From NCBI GenBank assembly GCA_021613535.1, contig CP075497.1:13764001-13828000 (forward strand): a DNA stretch of 64,000 bases. Direction: 5' to 3'. This DNA comes from Adineta vaga. Lineage: Eukaryota; Animalia; Rotifera. This document shows, piece by piece, positions 22,896-60,337 of the stretch (its first letter is position 1; every line of letters begins with the position of its first letter). The notes under the pieces are model-generated. The model saw only the letters and a program-made list of their open reading frames with translations. It made no database searches and was not told where the DNA came from. Position numbers and translations under genes: made by a program.

Positions 22896-22912
22896 TGTAG
22901 GTGTGAGTGTGG
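22896..22912 (+). repeat. Degenerate telomere-like tract (TGTAGGTGTGAGTGTGG)
   Basis: Imperfect TGTGGG-type units directly beside a hammerhead motif. Confidence 0.55.
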
Positions 22913-22926
22913 TTGAATAATTAACT

Positions 22927-22969
22927 ACCATGATTGGTTTCGACTTATTTCAAAGTCTCATCAGATGGT
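22927..22969 (-). ncRNA. Minimal type-I hammerhead ribozyme (stem III degenerate), Penelope/Athena-type
   Basis: Minus strand: ACCAT-CTGATGA-GACTT-TGAAAT-AAGTC-GAAA-CCAA-TC-ATGGT. Stems I and II pair perfectly. Confidence 0.75.
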
Positions 22970-23039
22970 TCATAATCTTCATAATGAAAATAATCTAAAA
23001 CCAATTCGAAAGATTAAAAAGGTCTTCTAAATCAATTTC

Positions 23040-24260
23040 AAACTACATAGTTCAAAAACGTATTATCAATATTCTGTCGTAACTGGTCACTGGGCGGAAA
23101 AATATTCCGTTGGTGGATCTTGTCGCGGTAAGTGACATAAAGATCTTTTTTGCTCTTACATTTATTGATATTTGTCTGTCTTTTTCTGTACAAAAAAAGG
23201 GAAGAAAGAAATTCAGTCCAATTCAGTTACGTAAAACATTATTTCTCTAGTTTTGTTTTCTTTGTCAAACAGCAGAAAAATATGCTAAAACAAATAAAAA
23301 TTTCAAAGCAACATTTAATTCATATTTCGAATTGTTCTTAGTCTACCTATGTTTTTTTGAGATCCGCTCATATTGTTTAATATACAATTTGATTTTTTTT
23401 TAAACTTTTGTTATTTACATTGTATTTTATTATGACTATTTTATCTAATAGTTGTTCAGTTGATTGAAACATGTCTAGAAATTTCATCTTTCAGTCTTAA
23501 ACTATATAGTACAATGCTGTAAACCTCTTTCATGTTTGCTCTTGCGCATTGTCATCCTGAGATTGGCATTATTCTTGATCTTACTGAAATTGTTAAGTAC
23601 ATTAAGAAAAATCCTGAATTATCAAAATTATGATAAAGACCGAGATTAATGAAAGACATTCATGAGCATCAGTTTGGTATGGGGATCTAGAATCGATTGT
23701 TTATCTTGACCACAGTATTTTAATTTTATGTGATTTTCTTTCAGTCCAACTGGAATAACCAGTGGTCGATCTGGATCGTAATTCATTGCCTATATCTACT
23801 TTAAGAGGGCAATCACTTGCAAAACATAATCAATTATGTGAAAAGCATTATGTAGAACCATTAATACTGAGCGAAGATTTGAACTATATCTCTCACGATT
23901 ATGCAAAGATACTTACTACTATTAATCAAGTTCCACCGAACTTTAGTGGAATTAGAATGGAGAATATATAGCTTTGATAGATTGAAATTTATCTGTTCAA
24001 AGGTAGTGACATAGTCACTGAATGGTATTGGCGAAAATACTGTCTATAATTATACGAATCCTCTTTTTTGAATTACAAATCATTTTGCGAAAATAATTTA
24101 GAAGGGCGCACGTCAACTAGGCATTGGTAGAGCATATTCAAAGACTGATACAATGTATGTAGTTGCAACGTATAATTCTAGAGAATATCTTGAAGAATCG
24201 TACGAAGAAAATATTAAAAAACAATGTTGAGAAATTATTGAAGAAGGAAGGATAGAAGAA
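23040..24260 (+). pseudogene. Degraded spliced gene of unknown family
   Basis: Exon-like stretches bounded by GTAAGT (about 23128), GTATGG and TTTCAG sites, with multiple stops. Confidence 0.3.
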
Positions 24261-24822
24261 TATTTTCAAAAATCATTTTGACTTTTACATTAATGTTTTG
24301 CACAAAAAATACAAATACTATTACTTTTAATTTTGTTTTATTGATCTTTATATTAACATTTTGTGATGATGGGTAATAGATACTATGTTTTTTTTTCTTT
24401 TTAATATATTAGTAAATAATAAGGAATACTCATACTATAGATTTAGTAGATCTTTACTGAAACGCTGCATACAGTGAATTTAAGTTAAGCGCTAAAAGGA
24501 ATGAGAATCTCAACAACTTGCTAGAACAAAAAAAAAATCACGTTTTCTGTTATGAAACTACATTATAAGAAACAGATATGCTTATTTTTTACCACAGTCT
24601 CTTCTCGTACTTCGTTTTCTTCATCTTTTTCGTTTTTTTACTTTTCTTTTCTTGCTTTACAAGAGTGTATAAATGGGTACGATCATTCACGCAGAACCAA
24701 TACTTAACTTCATCATTCTAATACACATAAAGGTAATTCGTCGATGTTCTATTGCTTTCATATTTTGCTTTTGTAATTGGAAAAAAAGATGAATTGGTCT
24801 CTGCTCATATGTGCTGTCTTAA

Positions 24823-27190
24823 CCCTTTCAGGACCGGCTTATTTTGAGGAAAAAATACAGTTATAATGTTCTTTAAAATGCTTTATTTTTGTGAGATGTA
24901 TCAAAAAGAGCATCAAAAAGCTTTCAAAGTGTGATATTCTTTGAAACAAGTAGGATTGCACAGTGGAACATCACAGTCCGGACAATAAAACCTTGTAACA
25001 CTCCGTTTTTTCTCCCGCTTGACTGAATGACTGCAGACGAAACAGCGTTTCTTGACATTAGTGCCAGGAATAAAAGCGATGAAATGACGAGCAGAGAGGC
25101 GTAGCGGACAATCGATTGGTGGTCTTCCTTTCGTCTGTGGCCGCATTGATCCATATTCTTCAATGTGTTCTCGAGCAAGTTCAAGACGAAATTCCGAAAG
25201 TTCGAGATTTTTGTGGGTTTTTATCTTGTACATGGCATAAGAGTTCTGCGCAGTGATATCAAATAAATGAAAAAACAATTTCTTGTACCATTTGATTGTT
25301 TTTCTTAGACATTCTGAGAAACTGGTTTGCATGTCCACTTGGTCCACTGCTCCCATATTTTTGTTATATTGTACAATACAATGAGGTTTCTTGATTTTTT
25401 GGCCTGCTTCTCTATCATTCTTACCAGTTTCTACCATGACAGGTTTGTGCGCGGTAGTAAGCATGTGCACCTCTCTTTTGTCCATCCATTTGAGTGCTAA
25501 AAGTTCACCAGTTGTTCGATATTCCTGTTGACCCTTTGCCAGCTTTCCAAACATTGGCATCCCATTTCTTGTTCTTTTCACAGTTCCACAAGATTTCGTT
25601 TTCTCCTCCAGTAATCTTTCAAATAATGTTGGGCTGGAATACCAATTATCAATGAAGAGTGTATGATTTTTCTTCAAATAATTTTTCATCAATGTTAGTA
25701 CTACTGAACCTGATATTCCAACCTCGGGATAATTGTCAATTTCTGTTTCTGCTCCAGTGTAAACGATGAAGTTCAGAACGAATTTGGTCTCACAGTCGCA
25801 TAACAGGAAGAGCTTTACACCAAAACGATGTCTTTTCGACGGAATGTATTGCTTAAAACTGAGGCGACCTTTCCAAAGCATCAGGCTCTCATCAATCCAC
25901 AAATTTTCCCATGGAATTATTGCTTTTCCAAATTTCTTTTTCAAATTTTCGATAATTGGGTGGATCTTTCGTAGTTTGCCTTCTTGCTCTGTGTTATTAT
26001 CAGCAAAGTGAAGATATCGCAGAACAGAAAGATACCTGTTCCTTGTGAAAAGCTCGCCGAAAATTGGTGTTGTTATCAGCTTATCCGTTGACCAATAATC
26101 TTTTATGCGATTCTTTTGATTTAATCCCATCAAAATAGTGGTAGCGAAAAAGATATACATTTCTTCCACATTAGTGTCGTACCAGGCGGCAGTTTTTTCA
26201 ATATTTGGTGTTGCATTTTGTTGTTGATAATTGTTAGTTTCTTCAACAATTATTTCCATTAGCTCGTTGTCAAAAAAAGCTTTGAAATAGTCAGATGGAT
26301 TGTTTCCTTCGATTTCAAATTCTTCGTTGACACCTGATGCTTTATCGGAAAATTTCAAGTCCTTGAGTTTGAAGCCACACTGACTCCACTTTCTGGGAGC
26401 ACGTTTTTTCCGAATAGTCGGTGATGCAATGTCCTTTTCTTCATCTTCTTCACTGGTTGAGGACATATGTAAATCGTCAAATTCTGTTGCTAAGTCTGAT
26501 TCCGAATCGTCGAAAACTTCGTCGATTTCCATTGGATTGAGCTTCTTTTTTCTTGAAGTTGCCATATGTAAATGAAACCTGTTAGTTAGCGTTTTACTAA
26601 TCGAAATAATTATGTATATATAATATTTGATATATAATATATGTTACTTCTGCTTTTATTATAGAAAATCAACAACTATATATACGATTTGAAAAGTTCA
26701 ACTAGAAGCGAAAAGAAGAATCTATGTGACGTGATGGAAAATCAGTTGACAGAGTACATTTGATCAGATGGAAGAGCATATGATGTCATCATATGTTCAT
26801 ATGGTAGATAACACTGTACACATGACGTCATGTATATATGTACGCAAAAGAACGAAAAAAGATATATGATGACGTCATGGCAACAATGGTAATAGTACAT
26901 ATATGAAGACATTGCATAGCAAACTGATAAAGTACGAATTGTGAACTCTTTATGTATCTAATTTTTTTGTCAGTATCTCTTTATAACTATCTAATAGATG
27001 ATGAACGAGAGGAAAAAATCCATGAAGTATAAATGAGAATAAGAAAAAAGAAAATACTAATAATAACACGGACGTTTAAAACAACATCCACAATATTTAC
27101 TTCAAAGAAACACGAAAAAGGTCGAATTTTTACACACAAGACCACATGACAGCTCAATGGCACTTTAAAGTGCCACCGGTCCCGAAAGGG
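24823..27190 (-). mobile_element. Full-length piggyBac transposon (2368 bp)
   Basis: TTAA target duplications at 24819-24822 and 27191-27194; 15-bp TIRs CCCTTTC(A/G)GGACCGG; intact transposase. Confidence 0.96.
24913..26565 (-). CDS. piggyBac transposase, 550 aa
   Basis: Acidic N-terminus, DDD triad (WIDESL, FIDNWY, GAVDQVD), KWYKKLFF, and a C-terminal Cys-rich domain (CFVC...CPDCDVPLC...CF..YH). Confidence 0.96.
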   Translation of the reverse strand: MATSRKKKLNPMEIDEVFDDSESDLATEFDDLHMSSTSEEDEEKDIASPTIRKKRAPRKWSQCGFKLKDLKFSDKASGVNEEFEIEGNNPSDYFKAFFDNELMEIIVEETNNYQQQNATPNIEKTAAWYDTNVEEMYIFFATTILMGLNQKNRIKDYWSTDKLITTPIFGELFTRNRYLSVLRYLHFADNNTEQEGKLRKIHPIIENLKKKFGKAIIPWENLWIDESLMLWKGRLSFKQYIPSKRHRFGVKLFLLCDCETKFVLNFIVYTGAETEIDNYPEVGISGSVVLTLMKNYLKKNHTLFIDNWYSSPTLFERLLEEKTKSCGTVKRTRNGMPMFGKLAKGQQEYRTTGELLALKWMDKREVHMLTTAHKPVMVETGKNDREAGQKIKKPHCIVQYNKNMGAVDQVDMQTSFSECLRKTIKWYKKLFFHLFDITAQNSYAMYKIKTHKNLELSEFRLELAREHIEEYGSMRPQTKGRPPIDCPLRLSARHFIAFIPGTNVKKRCFVCSHSVKREKKRSVTRFYCPDCDVPLCNPTCFKEYHTLKAF

Positions 27191-27740
27191 TTAATCAACT
27201 TTGGATTCATTGTAATTTCTCAATGTTATGCCAGAAACATGGAAGAGAGTAACGAAGCAATGATAGGTAGAAATAGCCTTCGATCAATTGCTTTACGTCA
27301 TCTGTTTTCTCGTTATGAAGCAATTAAACGCGTGGCTTCTCTCAAAAGAGGTAAGTGATTCTAAACCGTTTCTCTGCAATGTAAATATAGTTTGATGTTT
27401 GTTTAGTTTTTGACTTGGCTAGCAGGTCAGCATGCTTCTAGAAATGAACATAAAAAACCTTTATAACATTTGTTGCCACTAAAAGTAATTAAGATTTTCC
27501 GTTCACATCTGAGAAATTTCGTTGATTTTACTTAGAGTAGACCAAAAGCTCGTGTCCTGTGATTTAAAACTTTATAGAAAAGAAAATATTAAATATTTTA
27601 CTATATGAATACATAATATAACATCTCGTCTTGATTAATCTATAGAGAATATTCATCTTGGGTTTGAGTATAACATCCTACTATAGACTATGATTATAAT
27701 TTAATGAATATCTTTAGATTTAACTATGCTTTGACGAATG

Positions 27741-28496
27741 TTCTGGTATATTCTGAAACTGTTCACATTATATTTATTTCTCACTTTATCTGCTCATATT
27801 TAATGACATCATGTTCTAGAGCATCACATTTCGATAATATATCGGGTACAACATAAAAAATGATACCATTAGTATTTTCTCATTTCATTGACCTTCGTTC
27901 ATTATGGAAATGCCGGTTCAGTTTCAAAAGATGCGCTGTTAAATTCTCCACAAGATAGTGTGTCTACCACCCCAATCACATGCTTCTTTAGTTTCTCAAG
28001 ATTGATGCAACTTTTCAAAATGCTCATTTTTCATAATATTGTGCACTACTACCAGTTGTATTTTTAACTTTAGTTTCATACGGATATTCTTTCAAGCTTC
28101 GTTGCAGTAATTTATGGAATAAAGTTCATCACGGCAGGCGCTACGTTAATGTTAAAGTTGAATATACAGTCCTTACTCAATTAAAAAGCAACCAAAAGTA
28201 TTATGAAAAATGAACATTTTGGAAAGTTGCATCAATCTTGAGAAACTAAAGAAGCATGTGATTGGGGTGGTAGACACACTATCTTGTGGAGAATTTAACA
28301 GCGCATCTTTTGAAACTGAACCGGCATTTCCATAATGAACGAAGGTCAATGAAATGAGAAAATACTAATGGTATCTTTTTTTATGTTGTACCCGATATAT
28401 TATCGAAATGTGATGCTCTAGAACATGATGTCATTAAATATGAGCAGATAAAGTGAGAAATAAATATAATGTGAACAGTTTCAAAATATACGAGAA
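27741..28496. mobile_element. Foldback/MITE-like element with ~298-bp inverted arms and a ~160-bp spacer
   Basis: 27741-28038 is the near-perfect reverse complement of 28199-28496; no clear TSD or ORF. Confidence 0.8.
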
Positions 28497-28519
28497 AAGG
28501 AAAATTCAATAGATTTTTC

Positions 28520-28926
28520 TATAATAGTAGCTGATTTATCTCATTCATCATATCAATTCAATGTTCTTCACCATCTCTCAACTATATCACCTTATTTTGA
28601 ATCGAATTCTAATGAATTAAATTCAAATCCTTCATTAGGTTGTAAAGTTAATAAAGCAATTTATTTAATTCGGCATGGATCTATTTATGTAAGTTATTAT
28701 GATTATAAATATGTAATTGAACCATTTTTAAAACGATTAAATTCTTTATTAAATCAAATAAATTTTTCTCAATCAAAAGAATTATCTTTTTTATCAAGAT
28801 GGAAATCTCCATTTACAAATAAGAGTGAACAAATAGAAAAATTAACAATATTCGGTCGTCTTGAGGCATTTAATCTCGGTATTCGATTAGCATCTCGTTA
28901 TCCCAATGAAAAAATTACTAAATCAT
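28520..28926 (+). pseudogene. Histidine acid phosphatase/phytase N-terminal fragment, truncated by a telomeric tract
   Basis: Not in the ORF track. Reads QFNVLHHLSTISPYF...GCKVNKAIYLIRHGSIY...DYKYVIEPFL...EKLTIFGRLEAFNLGIRLASRYP, with RHG at 28671-28679. Confidence 0.75.
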
Positions 28927-28940
28927 TGAGGGTGTGGGTG
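28927..28940 (+). repeat. Telomere-type tract TGAGGGTGTGGGTG
   Basis: Directly visible; identical to the start of the tract at 60253. Confidence 0.8.
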
Positions 28941-28947
28941 TTCTAGC

Positions 28948-28992
28948 AGCCATGACGCGTTTCGAACCCGCTACGGTTCTCATCAGATGGCT
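28948..28992 (-). ncRNA. Intact minimal type-I hammerhead ribozyme
   Basis: Minus strand: AGCCAT-CTGATGA-GAACC-GTAGCG-GGTTC-GAAA-CGCG-TC-ATGGCT. Perfect core, stems I and II, palindromic ACGCGT stem III, and a GUC cleavage triplet. Confidence 0.9.
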
Positions 28993-29705
28993 TCTCAATG
29001 AAAAAAGATCAGAACTAGATTATTTTCAACTTAAAAAAGTCAAAAACAATCCAATTCAATCATTCTTAAACTAGGTTCAATGTTAGCTCTGCTTAGAAGT
29101 TAGACTAAGTGTATGAGTTTGAACAAATCAGACCTTAGTTTTGTATTGATTGATGCTGTTTTATGGTGTAGTCCGTTTGTTGCTGAGAATTTGGATGGAT
29201 GCTGTCATTTGAACTCTGGCTGTTGGTTTGGATGGCGTTATTCAGTTTGCTTGGAGTATTTGATGTAATTTGATGATGGATGATTGTAAAGGATTTATTT
29301 TATGGTACTTTTATGTTCTTTGCGAGACTAGTTTATTTTTTTTTTTTGTAACTTGCAGTTCTTTATCGTTGATCTCAATTGATTCTTGATCAAAGACTAG
29401 CATCCTATGAATGTTTGTTATATTCAAAATATAGAATGAAACGTTATATACTGTTTTTTATTGTAGATTCCGCTGGCTTGTGAGTGTCTGGATACACTAG
29501 AAAACGATATATTCTCATAATCCATGGATGTATGTTGAGTTTTGATATTGGTATATCGAGAATTCAAAAACATGTGAATATTTTCTTCATAGTTTTTTTT
29601 CATGCATTCTATACATATTGGTCACGTACAAAGCGAAGAAGATTTTTGATCAATGTATAGAAAGAAGAAACAGAACATTTGTTCTGGAAAAAATACCAAA
29701 GGAAA

Positions 29706-30103
29706 CCCAGGTCGAAATGGGTACATCGGATCCTACCGGACGGATGCAAAATCCGTTGTGATCTGGATGATCGGATCCAGTCGGATATTCCTTGTCGGAT
29801 TCCGATGTAATCCGCCGTTTGCCTTTGATATCCGATGATCGGATACGACGGGTTCCAATCGGATCCATGCAACTGGAACCGCCCGAATCCGATCACAGGA
29901 TCTGATCATTTCCGATCTTATTCCACATAATCCGATCATCAGAAATAATCGGAATTGACAGGTTCTCATCGACAGGATTCCGTGATAAAACCATCCATTG
30001 ACTGCTATCGGAACTGGTCGGATCATACAAGTACTTAGGATTTCCGTTCATTGGATTTTTTCATGTAACATGAACATAGATCCGATCGGAATCGGTGACT
30101 GGG
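29706..30103. repeat. Subterminal repeat block, CCCAG...CTGGG (may itself be a MITE)
   Basis: GC-rich block of GATCCG/TCGGA motifs in both orientations, bounded by CCCAGGTC and GACTGGG. Confidence 0.65.
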
Positions 30104-31266
30104 TTTACATCGGAAATAATCAGAAAACTGTGTATGCAGCTAAACGATGTGGCCAACATACTGTTGAAGAATTAATCTTTCACTCTTAAATTGAAAACTC
30201 ATTTAGCTATGTCCTATCGAGTGAAATTCAACAACTAATTGAAATGATAATATTTCTATTCGAAAGATAGAAACAAATTAGATTTGATTGACGACAGATG
30301 GTGGGTCTATGTCAAGAAATATTTAGTGCGTGTCAATAAAAATAAGACAAAATATACTGTTAAAATTAAATAAACCTTTGTGCAATGATGACGTGAAGAA
30401 AATTGATTTTTTCATCGGAAAAAATCTAATAATTGTCTATAATTTAAACAAAAGAAATTCAATTTGTTTTATGTCAATACAAGTCATATTGCTTTTTCTC
30501 TCTTCATAATCCTGCTATTACTATACAGCGAGATAAATCAACAAAACTTCTTCCCAATTGCCATTAAATCATTAGAAATTAATCTGAATTAACTAATAAT
30601 ATTAATAATTTAAAATATATTAAAAACTAATAAAAACAAGACGAAATCTTATATTAATTTTAGGAGAGAAGATTAACATCCGATAAAAATGGTGTTTATA
30701 TTTAACTTATAAAATGCATTTCTAATGAATATGTAATCAAACAAATAATGTTTTTTAATCGTTCTGAAAATTGTTCTTAAGCCTCATACTGGATAATTAT
30801 GAATTGACTGTCGCTAAAAAATATGATCAAGACGGTGTATTTGAATTATATTCGAGCACATTGTTTTTTGCACTACAGATTGGTGTCGCCCATTGTAAAG
30901 TTTTACAGATTATTTCTTTGATAATTCATGATAAGAAAATTTCAGCTATTATTGTATTGATTTCTAACAGGAGATTTGAAAAAATACAATATTTATGTAA
31001 GGATTTTCTATATTAACAGTTTTTATTCAAGATACGTTCGTTTCAGCTAAGGACATCTGTACACCGTCTATTGATTGTAAGATATGTTTTCTTTGAAATT
31101 TGGAAATGTTCCATATGTTTCTACAACGAAAAGTTCGAGATTTTCCGTGCTAACTTGAATATTTTTTTAAAAATTTATTATAATCTTTTAAACATTATTA
31201 TATTAATAATAAAGTAGTTTTAATTTAGAGTATTGTTTAGCTAAAAGATTTTATCGTATTATCTGC

Positions 31267-34200
31267 ATGGATTTTGATTTCAGCGAAGCTCTTGATTTTG
31301 TTACAAGCAGAAATTCAAAGAGATCAATAATAAATAATGAAAGAAAAATGAAAAAACGAAAACTTCATTATGAACAAACACCAAATGATAATGAATTACC
31401 GGATGTTATTTCCTCATTTACACCTGATACCGATGTACAAAATAAAATTACAACAAATGTAGAGAATGATTATTTATTAGAAAACCAAATGAATGAAAAT
31501 CTTATGGAATATGAAGACAATCTTAACGATTCTTATCAAATGGAAAATCTCAATATCAATGATACTCATATTATTGGTGATTTATCCGATGGTTTAGAGT
31601 GCTGTGATGATCTTAATATTGATTCCAAAAATTTATTACATAATTACACGAATATGTCAACTAAAGAATTTTGTTCAAACTTATTGAATTTACTACGAAA
31701 ATCGAATATATGTAAATCACATGCAAATCATTTGTTATCATTTATTTCTTCAACACTTCCATTACCGAATAATGTACCAAAGAATATGGAGAACCTGATA
31801 ACACGATTAGAAATTGAAAATAATACTTTAAAAAAACGTATTTTATGTACCAGTTGTAATAGTAATTTATCATGTGATAAAAAATGTTGTGTCAAATGTC
31901 AATCTAGTAATTCTAAAACATTTGCATATATCTATGATATGAATATTGAAGAATATATTAAAAGCATTTATACACGATTGAAGGTAGAAATAAATGAGTA
32001 TCAACATGAACTTCGAATTATGAATGATAAAAACAAAACTAATGATATAGGATTCAACAATGTTTATCAACAGCTATTGAAAAATAATCCCAATGTTAAT
32101 TTCATTACATTTCTATTACATCTTGATGGCATTAAATTATCGAAATCATCTAATATGAAGATGTGGTTGTTCTCTGGATCAATAATTGAATTAAGACCTC
32201 AATTACGAGATAATCGTTATAATAATGTATTATTTTCGTTTTGGTTTAGCTATAAAGAACCTGTTGCAAGAATATGGTTAGACAACTGCAGAGATACGAT
32301 TAAATTGATAAAAACAAAAGGTAATATAGACATACATATATAATTTGAGCACTTGTTTTCAGATTTAATGATTGAATGCATTGCTTTCAAAAAAATCTAC
32401 AGTACAATATGTTGTATTTGATTCATTCTTTTAATCTTCGATGAAAATATAATAGTACAAATATCGTTATGAGAATATATGCTTCTTTTCTTAGATTGTA
32501 TGTACATATGTATAGACTGAATAAACGATTATTAGGAGTAAAAAATCAGAAACAAAGAATGATTAACTCGTGTTTAGTTCATATAAAATATACTGAAAAA
32601 ATAGAAGATTTTGTTATTATTTATATATATGAATAGATAATAAGTATTCAGTATTAATCGAATAATAAGACAAAAATTAGATAGATTTCAAGGATATTAA
32701 TAAGAATTCAGATGTGTGTGAAATAATAATCGTTCTGAATGAGTTCATTTTCTTATTCGTTTGTACTTGTTTAGACGTTTAAATTATTTATTTAGAATCA
32801 GATGGAAATTAATTAATTATCGAGCTTCATAGTGTGGTATTTGATATGATGGAGCTTGCAACATTTTTCTTTTATTTTTTTTAGGAATATTAATAAATGA
32901 AAATCATCGAATTGAAGTTAAATTTCTTGCTATTACTGGAGATTCACCAGCTTTGAGCAAAATACTTCATTTTAATGGACATAATGGTTACTATTGTTGT
33001 CACTTTTGTTATATCCGTGGGATTAATATTAAAAAAAAAAGGCAATACTTTTATGAAAAAAAATTATTTTTACGTAATCCAGAAAAATATCACAAACAAT
33101 CTGAAGACGCTGAATCTTCAAAAGAAATCGTATATGGACATAAAGGTCAATTGTTTGGTACAAACATTCATTCTAAGGCATCATCTTGAAAAATATTCAC
33201 TGATAATAATTGAATTTGTTGAGACATAGTTCAAATGGTCGTATAAAGATTATGAGGTTGTAAAGATATTTAAACATAGAAATCTAAATCTTTCTCTATA
33301 CAATCTATATATAGATCTAATATTTAATGAAAAATATCCTTGTAGATTTTGCTCACTAAATTTAAACTACAATATTTCTCTGAATTACTTTTAAAGTTTA
33401 TTAAAAAGCTGTTAGAAGTAGATCTATCGAAGAAAAGCAGATTTAACTGTCTTATTTAAATCATACAAATTTTCTTTATTATAGGAATTTCAATTCTACA
33501 AGATATACTTGATATATCATTACCGTATAGTATTCTGATTGATTACCAACATGTTACGTTACTACGTCACACTAAGACTGTTTTGAACGAGATCTACAAA
33601 CTGCTTAAACCATCAAAACGTGAACAACTCAATAATAAATTAAGATTGCAATCCTTTCCACATTTCTTTCATCGTAAAATGAAGCCTTTTACAGAGTTTG
33701 CTTTTATAAAAGCAACAGAATTAAGAAATATTTTGTACTACGGATGTCTGCCTTCATTATTGGGTCTTATTGATATTGAGAGACTTGCTCACTTTGCTTT
33801 ATTTGTTTGTTCTATACGATTGTATCATTTACAGCCTTCAATGTTTGATAATCAAACACAAACGATAGCTGATGCATTGTTTGATCAATATTACAAAGAT
33901 CATGAATTATTTTATACTGGTATTCAAAATTTTGTATTGCATTTACATCGGCATTTTGGTGCACAATATCGCAATTATGGTTCATTAGCAAATATTGGTT
34001 GTTTTCATCAAGAAGACCTCATCGGTCATATAAGTAAAAATATTCATGGTTCTAATTATTATTCTGATCTTATAGTACATTATTATTCTATTGATTTTCA
34101 TTTGTATGCACAAACTGCTCATGCAAAATTTACAACAATTTCAAAACCTATAGATCTCAATGTTGATATTAATCTTAATAATTATCCTATTGTTACACAA

Positions 34201-34647
34201 TATCACGACAAAATATGCACATGTTTAAATCCTTTAAGTTGTGTTTCTATTTATCGACGATTTCTTATTCGTAATAACATGTTTCATTCATTAATCTATA
34301 ACAAAAGAGGAAAATCCAATAGTTACTTTGTATCTTACTACAAATCATCAAATGATCATAATCAACATTTTGGAAGAATTAAATTATTTTTTACATTTTC
34401 TAACAGTAATTATGCCCTTCTTCAACGTTACATACAAGATGATAACTTTAGTTCACTATTTGAAACATCATCATATTTCTCTTTATTAGAAAAACCATTA
34501 GATAAATTTTTTAGTTTGTTGTCTAAAGAATCATCTGATCTAATTGATATTATCGATGTCAATAATATTCTGAAACATTGTATTACATTTGAATTTCATC
34601 AACAATTAATTGTAACAGAAGTATCTGCATACCATGAGCACGACTGA
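31267..34647 (+). CDS. EnSpm/CACTA-like transposase, 3 exons (31267-32320, 32885-33145, 33485-34647), about 825 aa
   Basis: GT-AG introns keep the frame. Motifs: CxxC zinc finger, LHLDGIKLSKSS..MWL, GDSPA.S.IL.F.GHNGYYCCHFC, DYQH, KATELRNILYY, LHLHRH...YG.L...CF..E. Confidence 0.88.
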
Positions 34648-35129
34648 AAGTATTTTTTTATGTTATGAACTTTTTATTTCATCTATTTGAAAAAAAAAAT
34701 AAAAGTAGAAAACTATATTATAGAAATCACGTTTCATTATGCGAGAAGAATTCTTTCCAATTCTTTATGCATTCTTTTTACTTTCGAATCATTGGATGTA
34801 CATGATTATATTATGTTTATGCATCATTTTAGCCAGTTTAAACCTGAAACGCTTTTCTATATAGCTAAAGCACCGATAATATAAACACGTGTATGTATAC
34901 ATTAATACCTCGTAATAAAGGAGAAGGGAGAACAGAAAAGAGAAAAAAGAAAAAAAGGAAAAACCCTATCACGTTGGGATGTTAATATATAATACTGTGT
35001 TAAAACGGATCCATGGACGTGTATAACGTTTAAGCTATTTAAAATAGGAAATCAAATAAATCTTATTAAAATTTCATTCTATTTTATATCTACTTAGATT
35101 GTTTTTAAACTCTTCTGATTAATAAAAAA

Positions 35130-37398
35130 ATGCTTCGATCTCCTCGTGTAAAAAATGCACCTCACAAGTATTCACCATCACAACCAACTCTATACAGTCA
35201 AGAAAATTATTTATTACGTTTTGAAGATAATAATGAATTAGTTGTTGTTAAACGTTCAAGTATTAGATCAATCATTGAAGATAAAGCAATTGTTGGGACA
35301 GGTTCGAAACGTCGATTTGCAACAATTGAAGCTAAAGGTAAGAGATGGATTTTATCATTCTGAAAAAAGTCAGTGGTAATATTGAATTATACGAAAAATT
35401 AAATATTAAGTTGCATCGTACTCATATGCCTATATTAAATTATATTTAAAAAGTAATATTCGCACAATTTCTAAGCTAGATTTTTAAATTCTTATGTCAC
35501 GCACGTGTTTTTATTCTATTGAAAATCATAATAAATTAATAGAACTTTTTATTTTGATCATAGGTACATATACTGAATGTAATAATATGTATGAATATTT
35601 AAAAGGAGAAGAAGAAAATGATGATAATGATGAAGAAAGTAATAGTTTTTATATCATTTTGCTTGATTACATCACAAGCATTATGATTTTTTTCTAATGA
35701 TAATCCAATATTTGCATTCAATTCTTTAGATCAAATCAATGATCAAGAAGAGGAAGATGATGATCAAATGAATGAAAGTAAGAGTCCAGATGCAATACCC
35801 AGTATGTTGATGTTTCTTAAACAAATGATAATAATAATTTTTTCCATTTCCTTTATATAGAAGAACCAATTGTAACAAAAAAAAGAAAACTCTCTTCATT
35901 GATAGTCGAAGATAATGATGGTAAATATATTGAAGAAGGTATTTCTTTGGAGAAAAGATTTATATTAAATATAATTTGTTTCGAGTAGAAAATAAAATTT
36001 ATAATGACAAAACAGTTATATATGTACTTTAAATAAGAAATAAATTTGTAAAGAATATTATTTTAATTCTCTTGTAGAAAACATCACTAGTTCCAAAACA
36101 CAAAAAGATGTATCAAAGAAAAAAACAAGTAAATGTTTTCATGATGATTTTAAATATAAATATAATGTACTTCATTTAGAATCTGATCGTTTATCTGATA
36201 ATTCTATTGTTCGAAGTAAAACTGTCATTTAATTATATGCATTAATATAGTCATAATTTACATTTTAGATGACGTTTTAGTCAATCAGAATCAGAATAAT
36301 GAAGAAAATGAAACTATACAAAGTATGTGTAACTATTCAAGCTGGATTGTCAATCATAATGTTATTATTTAATCATTTTAAAGCTAATACTATTGGATTT
36401 ATTTTTTGGAATTGTTTTGTATATTTTCTAGCTCGATTGATGTATCAAACAATTGATGACATGCATCAGACGATTTTACAAAGAATGGAAAAGAAATTTT
36501 CTAATTTTACCAGAAAGTTAGATCAGTTAATTCCTTGTGCAGTAAATAATACACAATCGTGAGACTGCTGAATTCAATATATTTTTGTTACTTTAGGTGT
36601 ATCAAAATTTGGATAGTTATCGAGAGAAAAACGAAGTTTTTCCTACTACAATCGTAAGGGTTCTTTTATATTTGTTTTTTAATGATGAATTATCCTGTTT
36701 CTTTTAGATGTATAAAGATAAAAATCTTTTAGAGAGTCGAGGGAGAGATATCTATGATTTCGGAAGACAGGTGTTAGGAGTTTTATATACACCAGAAGAA
36801 TTAAGTTCTTCTATTTTACCACCTGATAGAAGTCATTTAGCACGACCAGCGTTGGATCCTCAACGTTTTGGAATATTTCATGGTATGTAGTTTCAATTGA
36901 ATATGAGAGCATTTTTAAACAAAAATATTCAAAATACATAGAATTCAATGCAAAAAAAGTCCATGAGAAGAGTAATTTTAATAGATTATCTTATAGTTAC
37001 TAACTGATTTAGTTCTCAAAAATTGCGTTTAACGAATATTTTCATTAAAAGTTTAACTAAAAGCGAATAAGATAATATTGTTTTAATTAGTTATTGGTTG
37101 TGGAAGGAATGACTTTACTTAATTCAATACGGTTTCAGGAGATTTAAATATTCGCTATATTCTATGTTACAAATCGCAAATGTATTAATAAAGATTGTTA
37201 ATTGTGAACGTCTTTTTTTCTATAGAAGCTGTTCGAGTTAAATACAGAATATCTGTCCTACATTATGATACTTGCTATTCTAAATTAATACGACCAAGAA
37301 TGTGTGATTTCCTAATTGACGAACGAAAAAGACAAAAAAAGGCACTGGCAAAAAAATTAATACAAATTCAAGAACAAAATATAAACAATGACATTTAA
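35130..37398 (+). CDS. Multi-exon transposon accessory protein with an acidic middle and a putative C-terminal BEN-like domain
   Basis: Many small GT-AG exons. The 3' exons read GRDIYDFGRQVLGVLYTPEELSSSILPP...ARPALDPQRFGIFH-EAVRVKY. Confidence 0.6.
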
Positions 37399-38327
37399 TG
37401 GTTTTCTTATATTCAATTATTATTGAGCTATTATTGATCTTCTTGGAAACTTTTCTTCTAGATAATCAAGAAGATCTGCTTGTATTAATATAAGCACTGC
37501 TCAATTATGTTGAATATGAATTTGATTTTCAAGTTTTTCCGTTTTTTTCTTTTTTTGTCTATCATTAACATATATTTTTAATCAAAGAAATCAACTCTTT
37601 TGGTAATTTAGGACAAGATATTGAATTGACTAACCAGTAGTTTATCATATAAATCAATAGAGAATTAAGCGAGCATGAATTATTTAACAATTTAAAGTAA
37701 ACTATAGGTTTTATATGGAAACAAATATTAGTTCAAATTGTCTCTTTGATCTATAAACTTTTTCTTTTTCTCATCTCAATGTTTACTTTGCCGATTATAC
37801 ATTTAGTCTTATTCTACATGAATTTTATTTTTAATATTGGTCAGATTAATAATACAATGAATTCGAGAATGAACCAGCAAAGAATCAACAGTTCAATACT
37901 GAGGTGAGGGAATAGAAGAAAAATATATAAACATAATGTTATCTCATATATTGATAATATTGCAAAATAACGAAATTAAAGTCTTGACTTTTTAAAAGTT
38001 TTATTTCTAAACTTGTAATGCTTTCTTTTCATAAAACAATCACTTCTGGAATGCAAATATTTTCAATAAATCTTATGTGAGTTTAAAAAAACATCTAATG
38101 ATGCATAATAAGAAAAGTACAATAGACATCACCATCGACGAATAAAGAAAAAAAAAGTAAAACAGGAATAATAACATAATGAATAGAAGAAGTTAGAAGA
38201 ACAATCTAATTTACATTGTGATCATTCTTCTAAGAAATTTCAATAAGAAAACCAATAGATATTGATAAGGATATAAAGTAGAAAAAGAAAAGCATTTCCA
38301 AATTTCAAAACATGAATAAAATCATTC

Positions 38328-44151: not shown

Positions 44152-44159
44152 GCCTCCAT

Positions 44160-44770: not shown

Positions 44771-45217
44771 TTAAAAATATTATGATAAACAAGAAAAATA
44801 ATTTGATAAAAAATTTTCTTTTTTCTAAAACTGAACAAAACGAATTTTTTCTAAAAATATTTCAATTAAAGATTTGGTGAATTAAATAAAAACAAGATTT
44901 TTTAGGTATGGTATAAAGAAAATGACTTGAATTGTCCACACCTACACTCTCAAGATGGTTTTGTGAAAGCTAATACAATGCATTCGAATTTATAAATTAT
45001 TATCCAGTACATTTTGTAATAAATGTGGATCATTTTTCTTTATAAATGTAGAATAAAGAACAGTATGACGCAGGTAGTGACACAGAAAGCGTTAACGTTT
45101 TTAAATAAATAACGTCACAATAAAAAGATAACTAACGATGAGAAGTCCGATTTAATGTTAGTTCTCTTTTTAAATATTTATTATATTTTGTTCTAAGAAC
45201 AAATTCTTATTAATGAG

Positions 45218-47589
45218 ATGTTTTGTAGAACAATCTGTCGTGTTATTCTCGCAGTTTTAGCAACATTAATTATTGCCGATGGTTCATATCAGTTTGATTA
45301 TTCTGGCAAAAATGGTGTTGCTGATTTACTTTCTGTAGCTCGAATTAGTAGAAGAAAAACAACAGGTAAAGTACCATCAACAGTATCTGAGGTAGGATCC
45401 GGATCCAAAAAAAAGGGTTTATATAGCTTCGTATATACATAATCATATATTTTTATGAACTCTTACAGCTTCTCATTACTTTTAGTTACTCAATGTCTCC
45501 AACCATTTGGTATTCCAAATGCTTTTCTAACTGGGTTTATACCAAATTCAGTGGTCTCGGATGATTTCAATGATGATGGCAAACGAGACCTAGCAATTGT
45601 CAATACTGGGGGCAATACTGTTAGCATTTTGTTAGAGAATGGTAATCAAACATTTAGAAATCAGATAGTATATTCAACTGAACACAGTCCATGGTCAATC
45701 ATCTCGGGTGATTTTAACAATGACAGTAAAGTAGATCTAGCAGTGACCAATTATGACAATGATACAGTTAGTGTTTTGCTCAATAATGGAGATGGAACAT
45801 TTCGCAACCAGAGCGTGTACGCAACTGGTAGTCATCCGTTTTTTATAACAGTCGGTGATTTTACAAATGATGGCAAATTAGATCTAGCAGTGACCAATAC
45901 TGGAGATAATACAGTTAGTGTTTTACTAGGAAACGGACATGGGAGATTTAAAAATCACACAGTGTATCCAGTTGGAGATACTCCACGCGCTGTTGTAGCA
46001 GGTGATTTTAATTCTGATGGCATTGTAGACTTGGTAGTAACGAATATGAGAAGTTCCACGTTTAGTTTACTTCTCGGCAATGGCAATGGGACGTTCCGTG
46101 ATCAGATGATATACTCAACTGGTGATGAACCAGAATCAGTGATTACACGTGATTTCAATAACGATAATAAACTGGATTTGGCAATTACTAATTCTTATAT
46201 GCCCATGGTAACTATTTTTCTTAGCAACGGGAATGCAACGTTCGAAATATCGGGCGAGTACGAAGTTGATGACGCACCGTCTTCAGTCGTATCAGATGAT
46301 TTCAATAAAGATGGCAAATTAGATATTGCAGTAACTAGTTTTAATAACGGCGTAATTAATGTTTTTCTTGGTAAAGGTAATGGAGAATTCACAAAGCGGA
46401 CAACATACTATGCAGGAGCCATGGCAATTTCAGCTACAGCGGATGATTTTGGCAATGATGGCAAATTAGATTTGGCAGTAGTCGATGGTAGTAGTGGAAT
46501 TGTTACTCTTCTTGCTAATAATGGAGATGGAACATATATCGAGATCAAAGACGGTATCTAACTGATTCCAAACCATATTCAGTGATCTCGGGCGATTTGA
46601 ATAAAGATGGCAAATTAGATGTGATAGTAGGTAACTATGACAATCCGACAGTAACTGTACTTCTAGGTAATGGACGAGGTGAATTTGGAAATCAGACGGA
46701 GTACTTGACCGGATATCATCCACGTGCAGTAATAGCAAGTGACTTGAATAATGACAATATATTAGATTTAGTAACGGCCAATGAATATGATAATACAGTT
46801 AGTGTACTCCTTGGTAATGGTGACGCCTCCTTCCTTAATCAAACAGTGTACTCAACTGGAAATCAACCATCATCAGTGGTTTCGAGTGATTTCAACAATG
46901 ACGGCAAATTGGATCTTGCCGTAACAAATGTTCTAAGTAACTCTGTTAGTATTTTACTGGGTAATGGTGATGGCTCGTTCAGCAACAAGGGGGAGTATTC
47001 AACTGATACTGAACCAACTTCTGTCATATCGGATGATTTCAATCAGGACGGATATAAAGATTTAGCAGTGACAAATTTTGTCAGTTGTACTGTGAGCATA
47101 TTTCTTGGAAAAGGAGATGGTACATTCGGTAATCAGACAGTATACTTCACTGGATTGTATCCTAGATCAGTAATATCAAACGACTTCAATAACGATGGTA
47201 AAGTAGATTTAGTAGTAGCCAATTCATACTTTACTCAGCAGAATGGTACAGTCAGCATTTTTTTGGGTCATGGGGATGGTACATTTGATGATTCTATCGA
47301 ATACTTGACTGGATATGGACCATATGCAGTTATCTCCGGTGATTTCAATAACGATACTAAACTTGATTTAGTAGTAGTCAATTGCGATAGCTCAACGGTT
47401 AGCGTATTGCTCGGCAATGCCGATGGTAGCTTTCAAAATCAGCTACAATACCTAACTGGAGAGAATCCAAAATCAGTAACAGCGGCTGATTTTAATAACG
47501 ATAAAAGACTTGATTTAGTAATTGCAAATAAGATGGGATCCAGTTTGACCATTCTTCTGAACTCTTGTTTATCAGGAACATACAACTGA
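45218..47589 (+). CDS. Secreted FG-GAP/VCBS-repeat protein (14 repeats) with one frameshift
   Basis: Signal-peptide exon, short intron, then 7+7 DFNxDGKLDLAV...VSVLLGNGDGTF repeats. An extra AT in ATATAT (46534-46539) breaks the frame. Confidence 0.85.
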
Positions 47590-47899
47590 ATTCCATACAT
47601 ATAATTTTTATATCAATCGTATTTTCCTTTATAGTTTTCATTGCTATTTCGAATAAATATTTAATTAGAAGTATTTCATTTTAGATTATTAAAAATATGA
47701 GAAAGTAGAAAAAAGAAAGAACATTTTAAATAAAAAACAAATACCATGTTAATAACAAGAAATATTTGTGAAGTTTTTTAGTATTATGTCTGTCACACAT
47801 TAACTTCTCTTTAGAATAAATATAAAAAAAGGACGAGATAATATAACATTCATTCGTATACCTTTATCGTCATAAATATTCTCTAGCTTGAATCGATAA

Positions 47900-49250: not shown

Positions 49251-49454
49251 AAAGTAACTGTATTAACAATAAAATTGTTTGAACATCGAGGTAATAAAAA
49301 TAAAAAATAAATTCTTTTCTTTTGAAATCTGTTAATTATTTCAGTTAGAAACTCTACCATCGAACTGTTTCTTCTCGAATTGAAAAGTATTTATCTCGTT
49401 ACCCTTCATGATGTTATCAATAGTGAATCAAAACATTCCCGAAATAAGAATGCT

Positions 49455-54893: not shown

Positions 54894-56047
54894 AATTTAT
54901 TATTATCGAAATCTATAAAAAAATTCTTTACTTTTATTTATAGTTCAATACTTTCCTTGTCAGTCTACATACCGTATATGAAATACATTCGTGATATATA
55001 AACTATCTTTCAGTAATGATGAAGAAAAATAAGCACATGGTTAGGTAAAAAGTAGTATACGTGAAATTATTTTCTTATCTTGAAAATAACTGTCACTACT
55101 AACAAACACCATCTGACAACAGATATAAGCCAACCATCTAAAGTTACTGAATCATGTATGAACAATAAAACATGAGAGCTAATAGTATCTTCTGCCTAAT
55201 AGACAATGATCATGGCATTGAATTTTTTAGCAACATCATGATTGCATTCATACCTTTTATGTTAATAATAGATTGTCAAGAACGACACAGTCAGTATTGT
55301 TGTTGATACATAGAAGAAAAGTGACGTTTACAAGCACCTTTTTCAGTCCTCCACAAACGTAATACTATTGTTTTATAACAGATAAGAAAGATTCTGTTAC
55401 ATCTTGAGAAGTAGATGTATGGGTGTTAGTATTATATTGTTCGTAGATCGCACCCAAACCTTTGTTAGAACTAGAAACTGTTAAATGATAGTACGCATAT
55501 ATAAAATACAAACTATATGCTACATGTTTTACTAGTATCAATTTACTCGTGTATTCTATGATAATCAAAACTGATCTTTTACAAAATTCCCGTGCTTACT
55601 GGACATTGCATGGTACATGGATGTGGATGATGGTGAGGATACAAAAACAACCACATTCACTCTCACCCTCGATTATGTGTTTCTTTCAAATGTTTATCTT
55701 CTAGAATATTTATTTAATAATTATGATAAAAAATTGTTAATTTTTGTTTATTATATTATTCGTATTAAAGACCACGTTTTTCTTGTTCTGTTTTTAAAAA
55801 CTTCTCTTATTTGTCTTCATGTATCATTTCTTTTCCGTGAATAATTTCATTGCAAGTTCGACGTGTTTCTATGTTCATCTTTTGCATATTTTTTCATTTT
55901 CTTTTCGTAGTATTTCAATGATTTATTCGTTTTTTCCCTCCATTCTGTAAGAATAATATGCTGCATCAAAGTTAAAACTTTCATAAGATGTTTTATTCAT
56001 TACAAATCTTTTTTTAACATCAGAAAATCATTCCGAGCATAGGAAAA

Positions 56048-56497
56048 TCAATCAGATTGTTGCCAACATTTTCTTTCTTCAATACCAAATTTACCATTTA
56101 ATTTAGCTTTAGTGTAAAAATCTTTGATAGCCCAATCTCTTGATTCGCTTCGACTTTTCTTTGTTGCTTTACCCCAGATCGTTTCTGATATTGATGGACA
56201 TCGAAGTTTTGTAACCCATACCCATTCCCATCCTGAGAAACGTCCTTTTTGATAAAAATCACATTTAGCGTTACATACCAACATCGACTGGTTTTTACCC
56301 CAGTTTCTATTTTCATTATAACTATTACAGAATGCATCAAGACATTGTTGAGGATTCTCGTGAGAAAGAGTATCCGTGCAAGATCTCAATAGATGACCTG
56401 GATGAAGTTTTGAATTCAAAGTAAAATGTTGACTGGAACTAGTGTAGAACAGAATAAGAGTTAAATAAAAGCCAAACCAAATCGTCGAACTCTGCAT
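56048..56497 (-). CDS. Secreted anti-lipopolysaccharide factor (ALF)-like protein
   Basis: Signal peptide, then a C-x20-C-P loop (CDFYQKGRFSGWEWVWVTKLRCP) followed by IWGKATKKSRS...AIKDFYTKAKLNG...EE...W. A (TA)n TATA-like run lies just upstream. Alternative ATG at 56521. Confidence 0.75.
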   Translation of the reverse strand: MQSSTIWFGFYLTLILFYTSSSQHFTLNSKLHPGHLLRSCTDTLSHENPQQCLDAFCNSYNENRNWGKNQSMLVCNAKCDFYQKGRFSGWEWVWVTKLRCPSISETIWGKATKKSRSESRDWAIKDFYTKAKLNGKFGIEERKCWQQSD

Positions 56498-56674
56498 GTT
56501 TAACGATTGTAAAGAAATCATTTGTATATATATATATATATATACTCATATTCAAAACAAACATGATCGATCGTATTATTTTCAATGATTTAGATAAGAA
56601 TGGAGACGAAATAAGATATTTATTAAGAAAAGTACTTCCTATTTTATATACAATTATTTGATTAAAGAACAAAT

Positions 56675-58134: not shown

Positions 58135-59006
58135 AAATGAATAAATAATCTTCTTTTATATACATAACGATTTTCCTTTTCTTTTCTTACGCTTTATAAA
58201 ATTCATCAAGAACGAATGCATAAAGGTCAAAATAAGAAAAAGTGTTCTTTTTCGAAACAATGTACATTTATATAAAAGATAAGAAAAGAAAAAAAGAAAC
58301 TTGTGTGATTGAATAAACGTACTAGAATTTTTTTTATCTTAAAATTGATTGAAATGAATTAATTTTCAATTGTTTGTTCAGCATTAACATGTTTTAAACA
58401 GTTTTACGATAACAAAGTCGAAAGTGGACATAGTAGCCAGTCTTACATTCTACACTAAAGAAGGATTATTGCAAACAAAACTACATGTTTCATCTCTACA
58501 ACCCTATATCGAAACGAATCCAAGCGATGTCATAATGGACGAGTGCCGTCTTTAAAAACATTTCGAGATTTGCATTTTAAATTTCACCAATATTTACATG
58601 ATAATATCTCCTCTGCAGTCCGATATCAATTTTTTGTAGTAACCAGTAAAATTGCAAATCTAGATGCGTTTTTCTCCTCTTTGTGTTACTTATTCGCTTA
58701 AATTCCACTTTATTGTTATTTTTATCACGGTTATCTTCAGTCACTCTTTCTGTTTTTCATTTGCATTTGCTTCTCAAGATATTATTGTGCAAAACGATTC
58801 ATCATTTATTTCAAATGAATAAAATCATAATTGCAACCAATGTTAATTTTTGTTAAAGGGTATGGGTGAGCGTGATAGTCGCATCATTATTCTGTCGATT
58901 CCAACAGCCTTAAATTTCTACATATGTTTTATTTTAGTTTTCGATATTTTTAATTGCGGCGTTATTAGGAGGAATCAGAATACAGCTTATTGGCATAATA
59001 ATAATG

Positions 59007-60240
59007 TCAGCTGATTCGCCCATCGCGTTGTTGTAACTTTTCTTGAACAGTCCCCGAAATACCATTTCCATAGAACAGATTCAACTGCTTCATTTTCTGG
59101 AAAAGAATGAAACAAAAACTAAAGAAATGCATAGAGAATAAAACTCACCGTATTATTTCGGAGAGCATCAGCGAGATGTTGTGCACCAATATCTTCAATT
59201 TGATTCTCTGTTAGATGCAGCACTATGAGTCCCTGTATATGTTGCAGAAAACAGAGATGAGAAAACCTTTCAGCGCAATCCCTAACGGGATAAAAAGTGT
59301 GAGACACGATTATGCTGAACACCTTATCAATCCAATATCTGCTATGATTTCTGATAAAACCCTATAGAGTTCTTAAGTAGATGATTCAACGGTTTTTCTC
59401 TTTAAAATTAGTATAAAAAAGCGCGGAGAGAGAGAAGGAGGCAACGAGGGAGGTGGTAAATTACTGGCACGCGTTCTCATCTATTTCGCTTCGTTATGGT
59501 TGAGGCTTATGATCTGTTGCCAACGTGTATCTATTACGGTCTGTGATTCTATTTTGGCTATACTGCCATGGTCTGTTGTGCTATTTGGTCGTTCTGTCAC
59601 TGTCTGTGAGCGGATTTTTGCGAGCCTGTAGTGCCACGTCTGCACGTCTGTAACGGTTTCTGATTTTTTTGTGAATCGTGTCTGTCATGTTAGTGATCTT
59701 CTAAAATCAAATATCACGGTTTGTGAACCCGATCTATCACGGTCTGCGAGAGGATTTTGATCCCTCTGTCACGGTCTGTGGAGGGAACGGGGGATGGGTG
59801 AAAATTTCTACCTATAAACACTTCAGCATTCTCTTTCAGGTTGTGTTTCACAAAAGTGGAAAGAGACTAAAACTCACCATATTATTTCGTAGGGCATCAG
59901 CTAGATCTTGTGCACTAACATCTCCGATTTGATTATCTTTTAGATCCAGCACCATGAGTCTCTGTATATGCCGTCGAAAATAGAGATGAGAAAAGTAGGA
60001 AGAGACTAAAGCTCACCGTATTCTTTCCCAGGGCATCAGCGAGATATTCTGTGCCATTAGGGCCAATCTGATTGTCTGTAAGATCCAATGTAGTGAGTGG
60101 CTACATGTATGGTAGTCAAGCAGAGATGAAGAAAGTGAGAAAAGAGTAGAGCTCACCGTATTATTTCGTAGAGCATCCGCGAGATATTGTGCACCGACGT
60201 CTCCAATTTGATTGCCTGCATGCTTCAATGTGTTGAGTAC
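59007..60240 (-). pseudogene. 3' end of an RI-like/NLRC3-like leucine-rich-repeat gene; upstream part replaced by the retroelement
   Basis: Four 84-bp phase-0 exons (60157-60240, 60017-60100, 59878-59961, 59149-59232) each encoding LxxLxLxxNQIGxxGAQxLADALRNN, plus a terminal exon 59007-59096. Confidence 0.85.
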
Positions 60241-60252
60241 CTACATGTATCT

Positions 60253-60274
60253 TGAGGGTGTGGGTGTGGGTGTG
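60253..60274 (+). repeat. Telomere-type tract TGAGGG(TGTGGG)2TGTG
   Basis: Directly visible at the junction between the LRR intron and the retroelement 3' end. Confidence 0.88.
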
Positions 60275-60288
60275 TTTGAACAAATAAA

Positions 60289-60337
60289 TACCATAACCAG
60301 TTTCAACTTATTTTCATAAGTCGATCATCAGATGGTA
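60289..60337 (-). ncRNA. Hammerhead ribozyme-like motif in the Athena 3' repeat
   Basis: Minus strand: TACCAT-CTGATGA-TCGACTTAT-GAAA-ATAAGTT-GAAA-CTGG-TT-ATGGTA. Confidence 0.75.

Follow-up and report, generated by a model that had tools for sequence, protein, structure and literature searches.

Telomere tract-hammerhead junctions in the distal part of C6

We analyzed a 64,000-nucleotide stretch (the window; C6:13764001-13828000, forward strand) of the genome of the bdelloid rotifer Adineta vaga, which is assembled as 100.8 Mb in six contigs. The contig C6 is 13,893,210 bp long, and the window spans 129 kb to 65 kb from its right end. Three junctions in the window (J1, J2, and J3; 69 to 106 kb from the C6 right end) share one anatomy. 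At each, a G-rich telomere-type tract on the plus strand is followed, after a linker of 6 to 16 nt, by a predicted hammerhead ribozyme and retroelement sequence, all three elements lying on the minus strand (Table 1). An earlier reading made from the letters alone (the sequence-only reading) had placed such tract-hammerhead pairs at 22896, 28927, and 60253, and all three were confirmed. Read in the RNA sense, the order is stem I 5' strand, CUGAUGA, stem II hairpin, GAAA, a stem III of 4 to 6 nt, and the cleavage site; after the predicted cleavage site come the stem I 3' strand, the linker, and CACCCA/CCCTCA units. With good support, J1 to J3 are probably the 3' ends of endonuclease-deficient Penelope-like elements (PLEs) of the Athena/Terminon type, attached to telomeric tracts. 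The telomere repeat and its polarity are fixed by the C4 left end, where (CACCCA)n at bases 2 to 124 forms a true terminal C-strand array. The sequence GGGTGTGGGTG occurs 4 times in the window (0.07 expected).

Table 1. Features of the window (window coordinates unless C6 is given).
Feature	Position	Strand	Remarks
J1 telomere-type tract, degenerate	22896-22912	+	TGTAGG TGTGAG TGTGG; two substitutions relative to TGTGGG units
J1 retroelement remnant	22913-23006	-	~95 bp, strongly 5'-truncated
J1 minimal type-I hammerhead (predicted)	22926-22970	-	13-nt linker, intact core, stems I and II of 5 bp each
piggyBac-type transposon	24813-27199		PF13843, 1.8e-89; TTAA duplications, CCCTTTC... inverted ends
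Histidine-phosphatase-like exon fragment	28497-28926	+	RHGSIY motif; stops mid-exon at J2
J2 telomere tract	28927-28942	+	TGAGGG TGTGGG TGTT, preceded by T
J2 retroelement remnant	28943-29705	-	3'-terminal 763 bp; element at least 4.4 kb long
J2 hammerhead (predicted)	28948-28992	-	6-nt linker, perfect CUGAUGA...GAAA core
Degenerate palindrome	44905-44958
Degenerate palindrome	55600-55672
Anti-lipopolysaccharide factor/scygonadin-family open reading frame	56048-56521	-	PF11630, 8e-10
RNI-type leucine-rich-repeat gene	59104-60228	-	One repeat per exon; 5' part missing
J3 telomere tract	60253-60275	+	ATCT TGAGGG TGTGGG TGTGGG TGTG; ATCT = preceding bases
J3 retroelement body	60276-64000	-	Continues beyond the window, reaching at least C6:13832421 (8.2 kb or more)
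J3 hammerhead (predicted)	60291-60340	-	~15-nt linker, two extra bases after CUGAUGA
Fossil 3' end within the J3 element	60468-60540	-	~215 bp in; GGGTGAG, 30-nt linker, degenerate hammerhead

The flanks of the three junctions differ, in agreement with the earlier view that they are independent events. That view also took different stems to mean independent families; this held for J2 relative to J1 and J3 and failed for J1 relative to J3, whose stem II sequences are homologous. Host genes had been said to be cut, and this is the case at J2 and J3. The phosphatase reading interrupted at J2 continues in a 79% paralog on C2 for >110 codons in the same exon and beyond, and no other piece of the gene was found within the terminal 129 kb. 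J3 lies in an intron of the leucine-rich-repeat (LRR) gene, ~10 nt upstream of an exon's 3' splice site; no LRR exons were found anywhere distal of J3 in the last 129 kb. J1 cuts no recognizable gene, its left flank being an AT-rich spacer in which none was recognized. No target-site duplication was visible at J1, J2, or J3.

The J1 remnant is 76 to 86% identical to copies at C1:17368184, C6:1244290, and C3:17646. Copies of the J2 remnant lie at C3:2163889 (94%), C3:20277596 (83%), C2:16131981 (78%), and C4:5505 (71%), and J2-family copies elsewhere extend with shared sequence and an RT (reverse transcriptase)-like region. Capped chains of typical form are present in this family at C3:20.277 Mb and C3:2.16 Mb, the former as a head-to-tail series behind a 218-bp telomeric array. 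The J2 remnant itself ends at 29705/29706 with no telomeric cap, abutting the terminus of another multi-copy repeat. The J3 element has two 98 to 99% copies near the C3 left end. Since the 99% C3 copy also carries the fossil 3' end, with an identical 30-nt linker, we regard this feature as part of the family's composite tail and not as a separate event.

Support for the hammerheads

No call was obtained for J1, J2, or J3 from Rfam at gathering thresholds; at E values of up to 10, J1 alone gave a weak Hammerhead_3 match (28.6 bits against a cut-off of 48.5). Because Rfam gives no gathering match, hammerhead identity was argued from the core, the stems, and covariation. The CUGANGA...GAAA core is exact at J1 and J2 and is interrupted at J3 by two bases after CUGAUGA. 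Within the terminal 129 kb, the core and stem I occur together at J1 to J3 only. Minimum free energy folds recover stems I and II (z-scores of -1.1, -1.5, and -3.3). At J2, stems I and II have 6 and 5 bp, and stem III is a palindrome (ACGCGU) of the kind typical of dimeric PLE hammerheads; at J3, stem I has 7 bp, stem II is long and carries a GAAA loop, and stem III (ACUGGU) is wobble-palindromic. At J1, the stem III palindrome has decayed (ACCAAU).

Covariation was assessed over 37 genomic sites representing 25 distinct stem combinations, with partner shuffles (n = 1,000) as the control. Pairing was 95% in stem II, compared with 73% with shuffled partners, and 90% in stem I, compared with 82%; for neither stem did any of the 1,000 shuffles reach the observed value. 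Double changes were seen at stem II pairs 3 and 4 (CG/UA/AU) and at the stem I closing pair (UA/CG). In most families stem III is palindromic (ACGCGU, ACCGGU, AUCUAGAU, and ACUAUAGU), which is the signature of small dimer-forming PLE hammerheads. Judged on these features, the hammerheads of J1 to J3 are real and not chance matches.

The predicted ribozymes resemble the minimal type-I PLE hammerheads of Cervera and de la Peña (2014), as cited in PMC6431247, in the CUGAUGA...GAAA core, the open stem I, the stem II hairpin, and a stem III that is very short and has a palindromic loop (at J2, ACGCGU). They differ in that J1 has lost the palindrome and that J3 and two other young families share two extra bases between CUGAUGA and stem II, an unusual core variant. 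All three also score below the Rfam gathering threshold, and their cleavage is predicted from sequence.

Relationship to Athena/Terminon elements

The RT is retained at J3 and absent from the J1 and J2 remnants. Two open reading frame (ORF) pieces with YIDD (62683-63546 and 63509-64012) have 231 homologs, all bdelloid or unnamed, and the longer homologs score RVT_1 at 1e-5 to 1e-6. As Pfam and PDB sequence searches with these pieces gave no RT call, the assignment of the J3 RT rests on YIDD and the RVT_1-scoring homologs. No endonuclease domain was found in the J3-element ORFs of at least 150 aa, which are split by introns or frameshifts.

Athena/Terminon elements of bdelloid rotifers were reportedly treated by Gladyshev and Arkhipova in 2007 and by Arkhipova et al. 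in 2017. Our comparison is based on later papers by the same authors (PMC6431247 and PMC8557442). In these papers, the 3' end of endonuclease-deficient PLEs consists of a hammerhead followed by (ACACCC)n/(TCACCC)n, on G-rich telomeric DNA, and Terminon chains consist of head-to-tail units with captured host genes between them (PMC6431247). J1 to J3 share with these elements the hammerhead and C-rich repeats at the 3' end, the G-rich telomeric attachment, 5'-truncated copies, the subtelomeric location, host genes between head-to-tail units, and, for J3, an RT with no endonuclease domain found. A stacked arrangement with intervening host genes is thus already described for Terminon chains (PMC6431247). 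Unlike those chains, the 5' truncations of J1 and J2 lack a telomeric cap, and the units are 6 and 31 kb apart with non-element DNA between them. The sequence-only reading had named endonuclease-deficient Athena/Terminon tails on G-rich telomeric tracts, an attribution that the anatomy, polarity, and position support.

Position, polarity, and age of the junctions

We scanned the genome for the hammerhead core combined with a tract, using the reversed pattern as a control. The pattern gave 44 matches (~36 sites; 34 matches were retrieved), compared with 0 to 1 for the control. All of the ~36 sites lie within ~4.2 Mb of a chromosome end. Telomere-directed polarity (3' end toward the centromere) was found in nine of the ten sites within ~101 kb of an end (one-sided binomial P of ~0.01) and in ~20 sites overall (16 not). 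J1 to J3 have the polarity expected with the C6 right end as the target. The sequence-only reading had placed the chromosome end to the right, correctly, since the window stops 65 kb from the C6 end; of the non-random position and orientation it looked for across the genome, position is strongly non-random and orientation is telomere-directed only in the outermost ~100 kb.

Identity to the nearest copies rises from 76 to 86% at J1, whose tract is also decayed, to 94% at J2 and 99% at J3. From these values, J1 (proximal) would be the oldest and J3 (distal) the youngest, a gradient that fits outward growth or stacking.

The J3 boundary was further examined in contigs from four runs of four studies (2013 to 2022). 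These contigs extend across the J3 tract in full, from unique sequence of the LRR flank as far as 60279, where they end because depth rises two- to four-fold at the start of the multi-copy element. No alternative continuation from the J3 flank was listed among the contigs of those runs. These data support a real and stable host-tract boundary at J3.

A fixed tract start and interstitial telomeric palindromes

The tracts of the 37 junctions tend to begin in the same register. ATCTTGAGGG starts seven of them, all with unrelated flanks, and TTGAGGG starts ten; shorter nested starts (TGAGGG, GAGGG, and AGGG) are seen in about half of the 37 and in at least six hammerhead families. Within long telomeric arrays, TGAGGG accounts for 3 of 76 units (~4%). 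Genome-wide counts are 1,072 for TGAGGGTGTGGG with A or T 12 bases upstream (control, 12) and 783 for CACCCTCAAGAT (control, 2). Such sites, flanked by unique sequence, are found on every chromosome and on either strand. Among the first 100 sites listed, ~79 were tract starts by hand count; in these ~79, TGAGGG was preceded by T in 89%, by CT in 56%, and by ATCT in 38%. On C1, tract-start sites are sparse at 2.2 to 9 Mb and dense elsewhere.

Twenty central sites were retrieved. Most consist of a G arm, a non-homologous loop of 10 to 60 nt, and a C arm ending in CCCTCAAGAT; neither Athena sequence nor a target-site duplication was found in the twenty. Two telomere-seeded ends joined head to head would show this G-then-C arm order, which argues for seeds at ends that were rejoined. 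It follows that a short tract with an Athena tail could mark either a healed terminus or a transient internal end. Other explanations of the palindromes fared less well. As start-codon contexts, ~9 of 25 ATG-containing cases remained open over at least 20 codons (~18% expected), which is weak; a reading as introns, put to a spliced-ORF test at 20 sites, gave an ambiguous result, with few sites at intron ends; and miniature inverted-repeat transposable elements are disfavored by the non-homologous loops and by the lack of visible target-site duplications. No description of a fixed-start palindrome family was found in the searchable literature, and of interstitial telomeric repeats PMC8494291 notes only a local rise at one horizontal gene transfer hotspot.

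The window holds two degenerate palindromes (Table 1). An FG-GAP gene block at 44958-47690 and its 89% copy at C6:347266-349986 both start just after a C-rich telomeric arm. The two copies start at slightly different positions, and it looks as if their ends were separately capped.

We put forward, tentatively and as one joint reading that we hold possible rather than probable, that tract starts in the fixed register (C)ATCT-TGAGGG-TGTGGG, with conservation decaying outward, reveal templated end-capping across the genome. Telomerase or an Athena-type RT would copy an RNA ...CCCACACCCUCAAGAU at internal ends; the capped ends would mostly fuse, leaving a palindrome scar, and would rarely prime Athena cDNA, as at J1 to J3. 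Internal fixed-start tracts cluster in those distal compartments that also hold transposons and foreign genes. If the reading is true, bdelloid chromosomes would, in their plastic parts, be mosaics of fragments that had once been capped.

Surrounding sequence

Several recent blocks are common to this arm and other chromosome ends: one is 94% identical to C4:47-54 kb, with the same polarity relative to the end, and others match C3:1-5.4 kb (98 to 99%) and C6:347 kb (89%). Such blocks fit end-to-end recombination or joining. The first of them is an EGF/LDLa gene block (window 15068-21495) with segmental copies at C4:47601-54074 (94%) and C3:512819-518756 (88%); the C4 copy has the same polarity relative to its chromosome end, and homology ends 1.4 kb short of J1. 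In C4:1-8000, a 169-bp G-strand array lies 2.5 kb inward and is followed by J2-family elements oriented as at a right end, an arrangement that suggests an inverted captured chromosome end. No collinear homoeologous partner was found across the junctions, the flanks matching subtelomeric segmental copies and multi-copy families alone.

The J1-J2 interval consists of unique sequence, the piggyBac transposon, other repeats, and a 298-bp inverted duplication. The piggyBac has an intact 550-aa transposase ORF, and a 99% copy at C3:5403-7779 sits within a copy of the J3-family retroelement. The inverted duplication (98%; 27741-28038 and 28199-28496, with a 160-bp spacer) has no other genomic copy and adjoins the 5' side of the phosphatase exon fragment cut by J2.

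The J2-J3 interval contains repeats, bdelloid-only genes of unknown function, and FG-GAP, NHL, glyoxalase-like, and anti-lipopolysaccharide factor-like genes, the majority of these genes having paralogs in other distal regions. The multi-copy repeat that abuts J2 (block 29706-40147) has its terminus exactly at 29706, the base at which many of its copies start. The window copy exceeds the copy at C1:17517245-17519779 by ~8 kb of DNA, in which two bdelloid-only ORFs lie. At C6:7.89-7.92 Mb, diverged copies of this repeat form a palindromic cluster. The ORF at 31267-32343 was considered as a transposon gene and is not recognizable as one; it encodes a bdelloid-only protein of unknown function. 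At its right end, the C6 assembly stops within acidic-repeat, coding-like sequence.

Formation of the junctions

The following course of events would account for the junctions. A DNA end with its 3' strand toward the C6 right telomere would receive a short G-strand telomeric seed, starting in the genome's usual register with (ATC)TTGAGGG and continuing with TGTGGG units. The element transcript would end in a C-rich tail, ...CCCUCAAGAU, and this tail, which follows the hammerhead in the element RNA, would pair with the seed, whose 3' OH would prime reverse transcription. The product on the plus strand would read host, G tract, linker, reverse-complement hammerhead, and element body, with the cDNA 5'-truncated at J1 (~95 bp left) and J2 (763 bp left) and long at J3 (at least 8.2 kb, RT-encoding). 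In three independent events, the arm would have lost length and been rebuilt outward several times. The piggyBac, other repeats, gene fragments, and subtelomeric multi-copy genes that now lie distal to J1 and J2 would have arrived later, through end joining or through recombination of chromosome ends with one another. For the priming step, we infer the same chemistry as in the published Athena/Terminon model (PMC6431247 and PMC8557442), in which the C-rich tail by the hammerhead pairs with a G-rich telomeric end that primes the RT.

Two explanations would do away with chromosome ends altogether, and both appear very improbable. Endonuclease-type insertion into intact genes, with the tract as the element's own tail, can draw on the published placement of the C-rich tail in the element RNA, by which the tract could be partly element-templated. 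Seeded ends are nevertheless favored over it because target-site duplications are lacking, the gene remainders are missing (those of the cut genes are absent from the 129-kb terminal region), the polarity is shared, and identity is graded; moreover, no endonuclease domain was found in the J3-element ORFs, and tract length varies from 8 to 216 nt among copies of one family. Chimeric joining of long reads at repeats is suggested by the 98 to 99% copies of the J3 element, the repeat-rich region, and the C6 end without telomere repeats. Such an artifact would hardly have produced the J3 host-tract boundary in short-read contigs of four independent studies, and at J1 and J2 the remnants joined to unique sequence are short and diverged and would not mislead an assembler.

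The closer question is whether the seeded ends were ever stable termini. A short tract is not proof of a former terminus, because >1,000 Athena-free internal sites share the (ATC)TTGAGGG start. J1 and J2, and perhaps J3, might instead never have been stable ends, each representing one side of a patched internal double-strand break or a fragment end in multi-break repair; in either case, the ends would have been seeded, have primed an Athena cDNA, and have soon been joined to another end, the DNA in between being lost. This we consider rather doubtful. The random orientation of the deeper junctions speaks for it, as do the internal (ATC)TTGAGGG tracts, which are mostly palindromes polarized like two seeded ends after head-to-head fusion, the uncapped 5' truncations at J1 and J2, and the telomeric repeats and Athena fragments observed at the breakpoints of fresh deletions in A. 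vaga laboratory lines (PMC13564844). The neotelomeres of that study, formed at deletion-made ends, resemble J1 to J3 in their telomeric repeats and Athena fragments; they are fresh and were seen in reads, whereas J1 to J3 are fixed, range from old to young, and are embedded in a reference chromosome. Against a patch stand the facing of J1 to J3 toward a real chromosome end, matched in nine of ten near-end junctions genome-wide, the proximal-to-distal age gradient, which matches outward growth, and the lack of a partner C arm or of any continuation of the cut genes distal of the remnants. The sequence-only reading had proposed repeated breakage, capping, and re-extension. The age gradient, the truncated genes with missing remainders, and the polarity favor this; that J1 and J2 were true chromosome termini is not established, and we see the chances of it as evenly balanced.

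Several observations weigh against Athena tails added to successive chromosome ends. Besides the negative Rfam result, self-cleavage is a prediction, and the J3 RT is a candidate member of the Athena clade. The telomeric cap that is usual in published chains is missing from the 5' truncations at J1 and J2, and the DNA distal to these junctions is ordinary subtelomeric sequence and not retroelement, so that a second process beyond terminal addition is needed. The assembled C6 right end (C6:13888001-13893210) contains no telomere repeats, and the true terminus must therefore lie outside the assembly. The one exception among the near-end sites lies in inverted orientation 2.7 kb from the C4 left end, and the sites at 111 and 125 kb and deeper are unbiased (~11 consistent, 15 not). 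The TGAGGGTGTGGG start common to the J2 and J3 tracts is not special to these junctions, as >1,000 Athena-free tracts start alike; because these tracts are internal, seeds must also be made at internal ends that are later rejoined. Finally, the contig check covers J3 alone and reaches 27 rather than at least 31 bases beyond the boundary.

Priming from a free chromosomal 3' end has parallels elsewhere. In HeT-A/TART and in endonuclease-independent L1 retrotransposition, a free chromosomal 3' end primes the RT, giving polar arrays and no target-site duplication; HeT-A/TART and L1 are non-long-terminal-repeat elements with poly(A) tails and no ribozyme. J1 to J3 would be like them in priming from a free 3' end, in polarity, and in lacking target-site duplications, and unlike them in pairing to telomerase-type repeats through a C-rich tail beside a hammerhead. 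HeT-A/TART are reviewed in PMC5537684.

Implications

J1 to J3 are an instance of an already published mechanism in the species where it was described; they are real and not new. They are of use for annotation, giving three dated junctions, two truncated genes, and an order, old on the proximal and young on the distal side, that is in keeping with an arm rebuilt outward. A more novel lead comes from the fixed tract start and the palindrome family. If templated capping is true, they would give a handle on chromosome-break processing in a desiccation-tolerant animal and on the assembly of its gene-capturing subtelomeric compartments.

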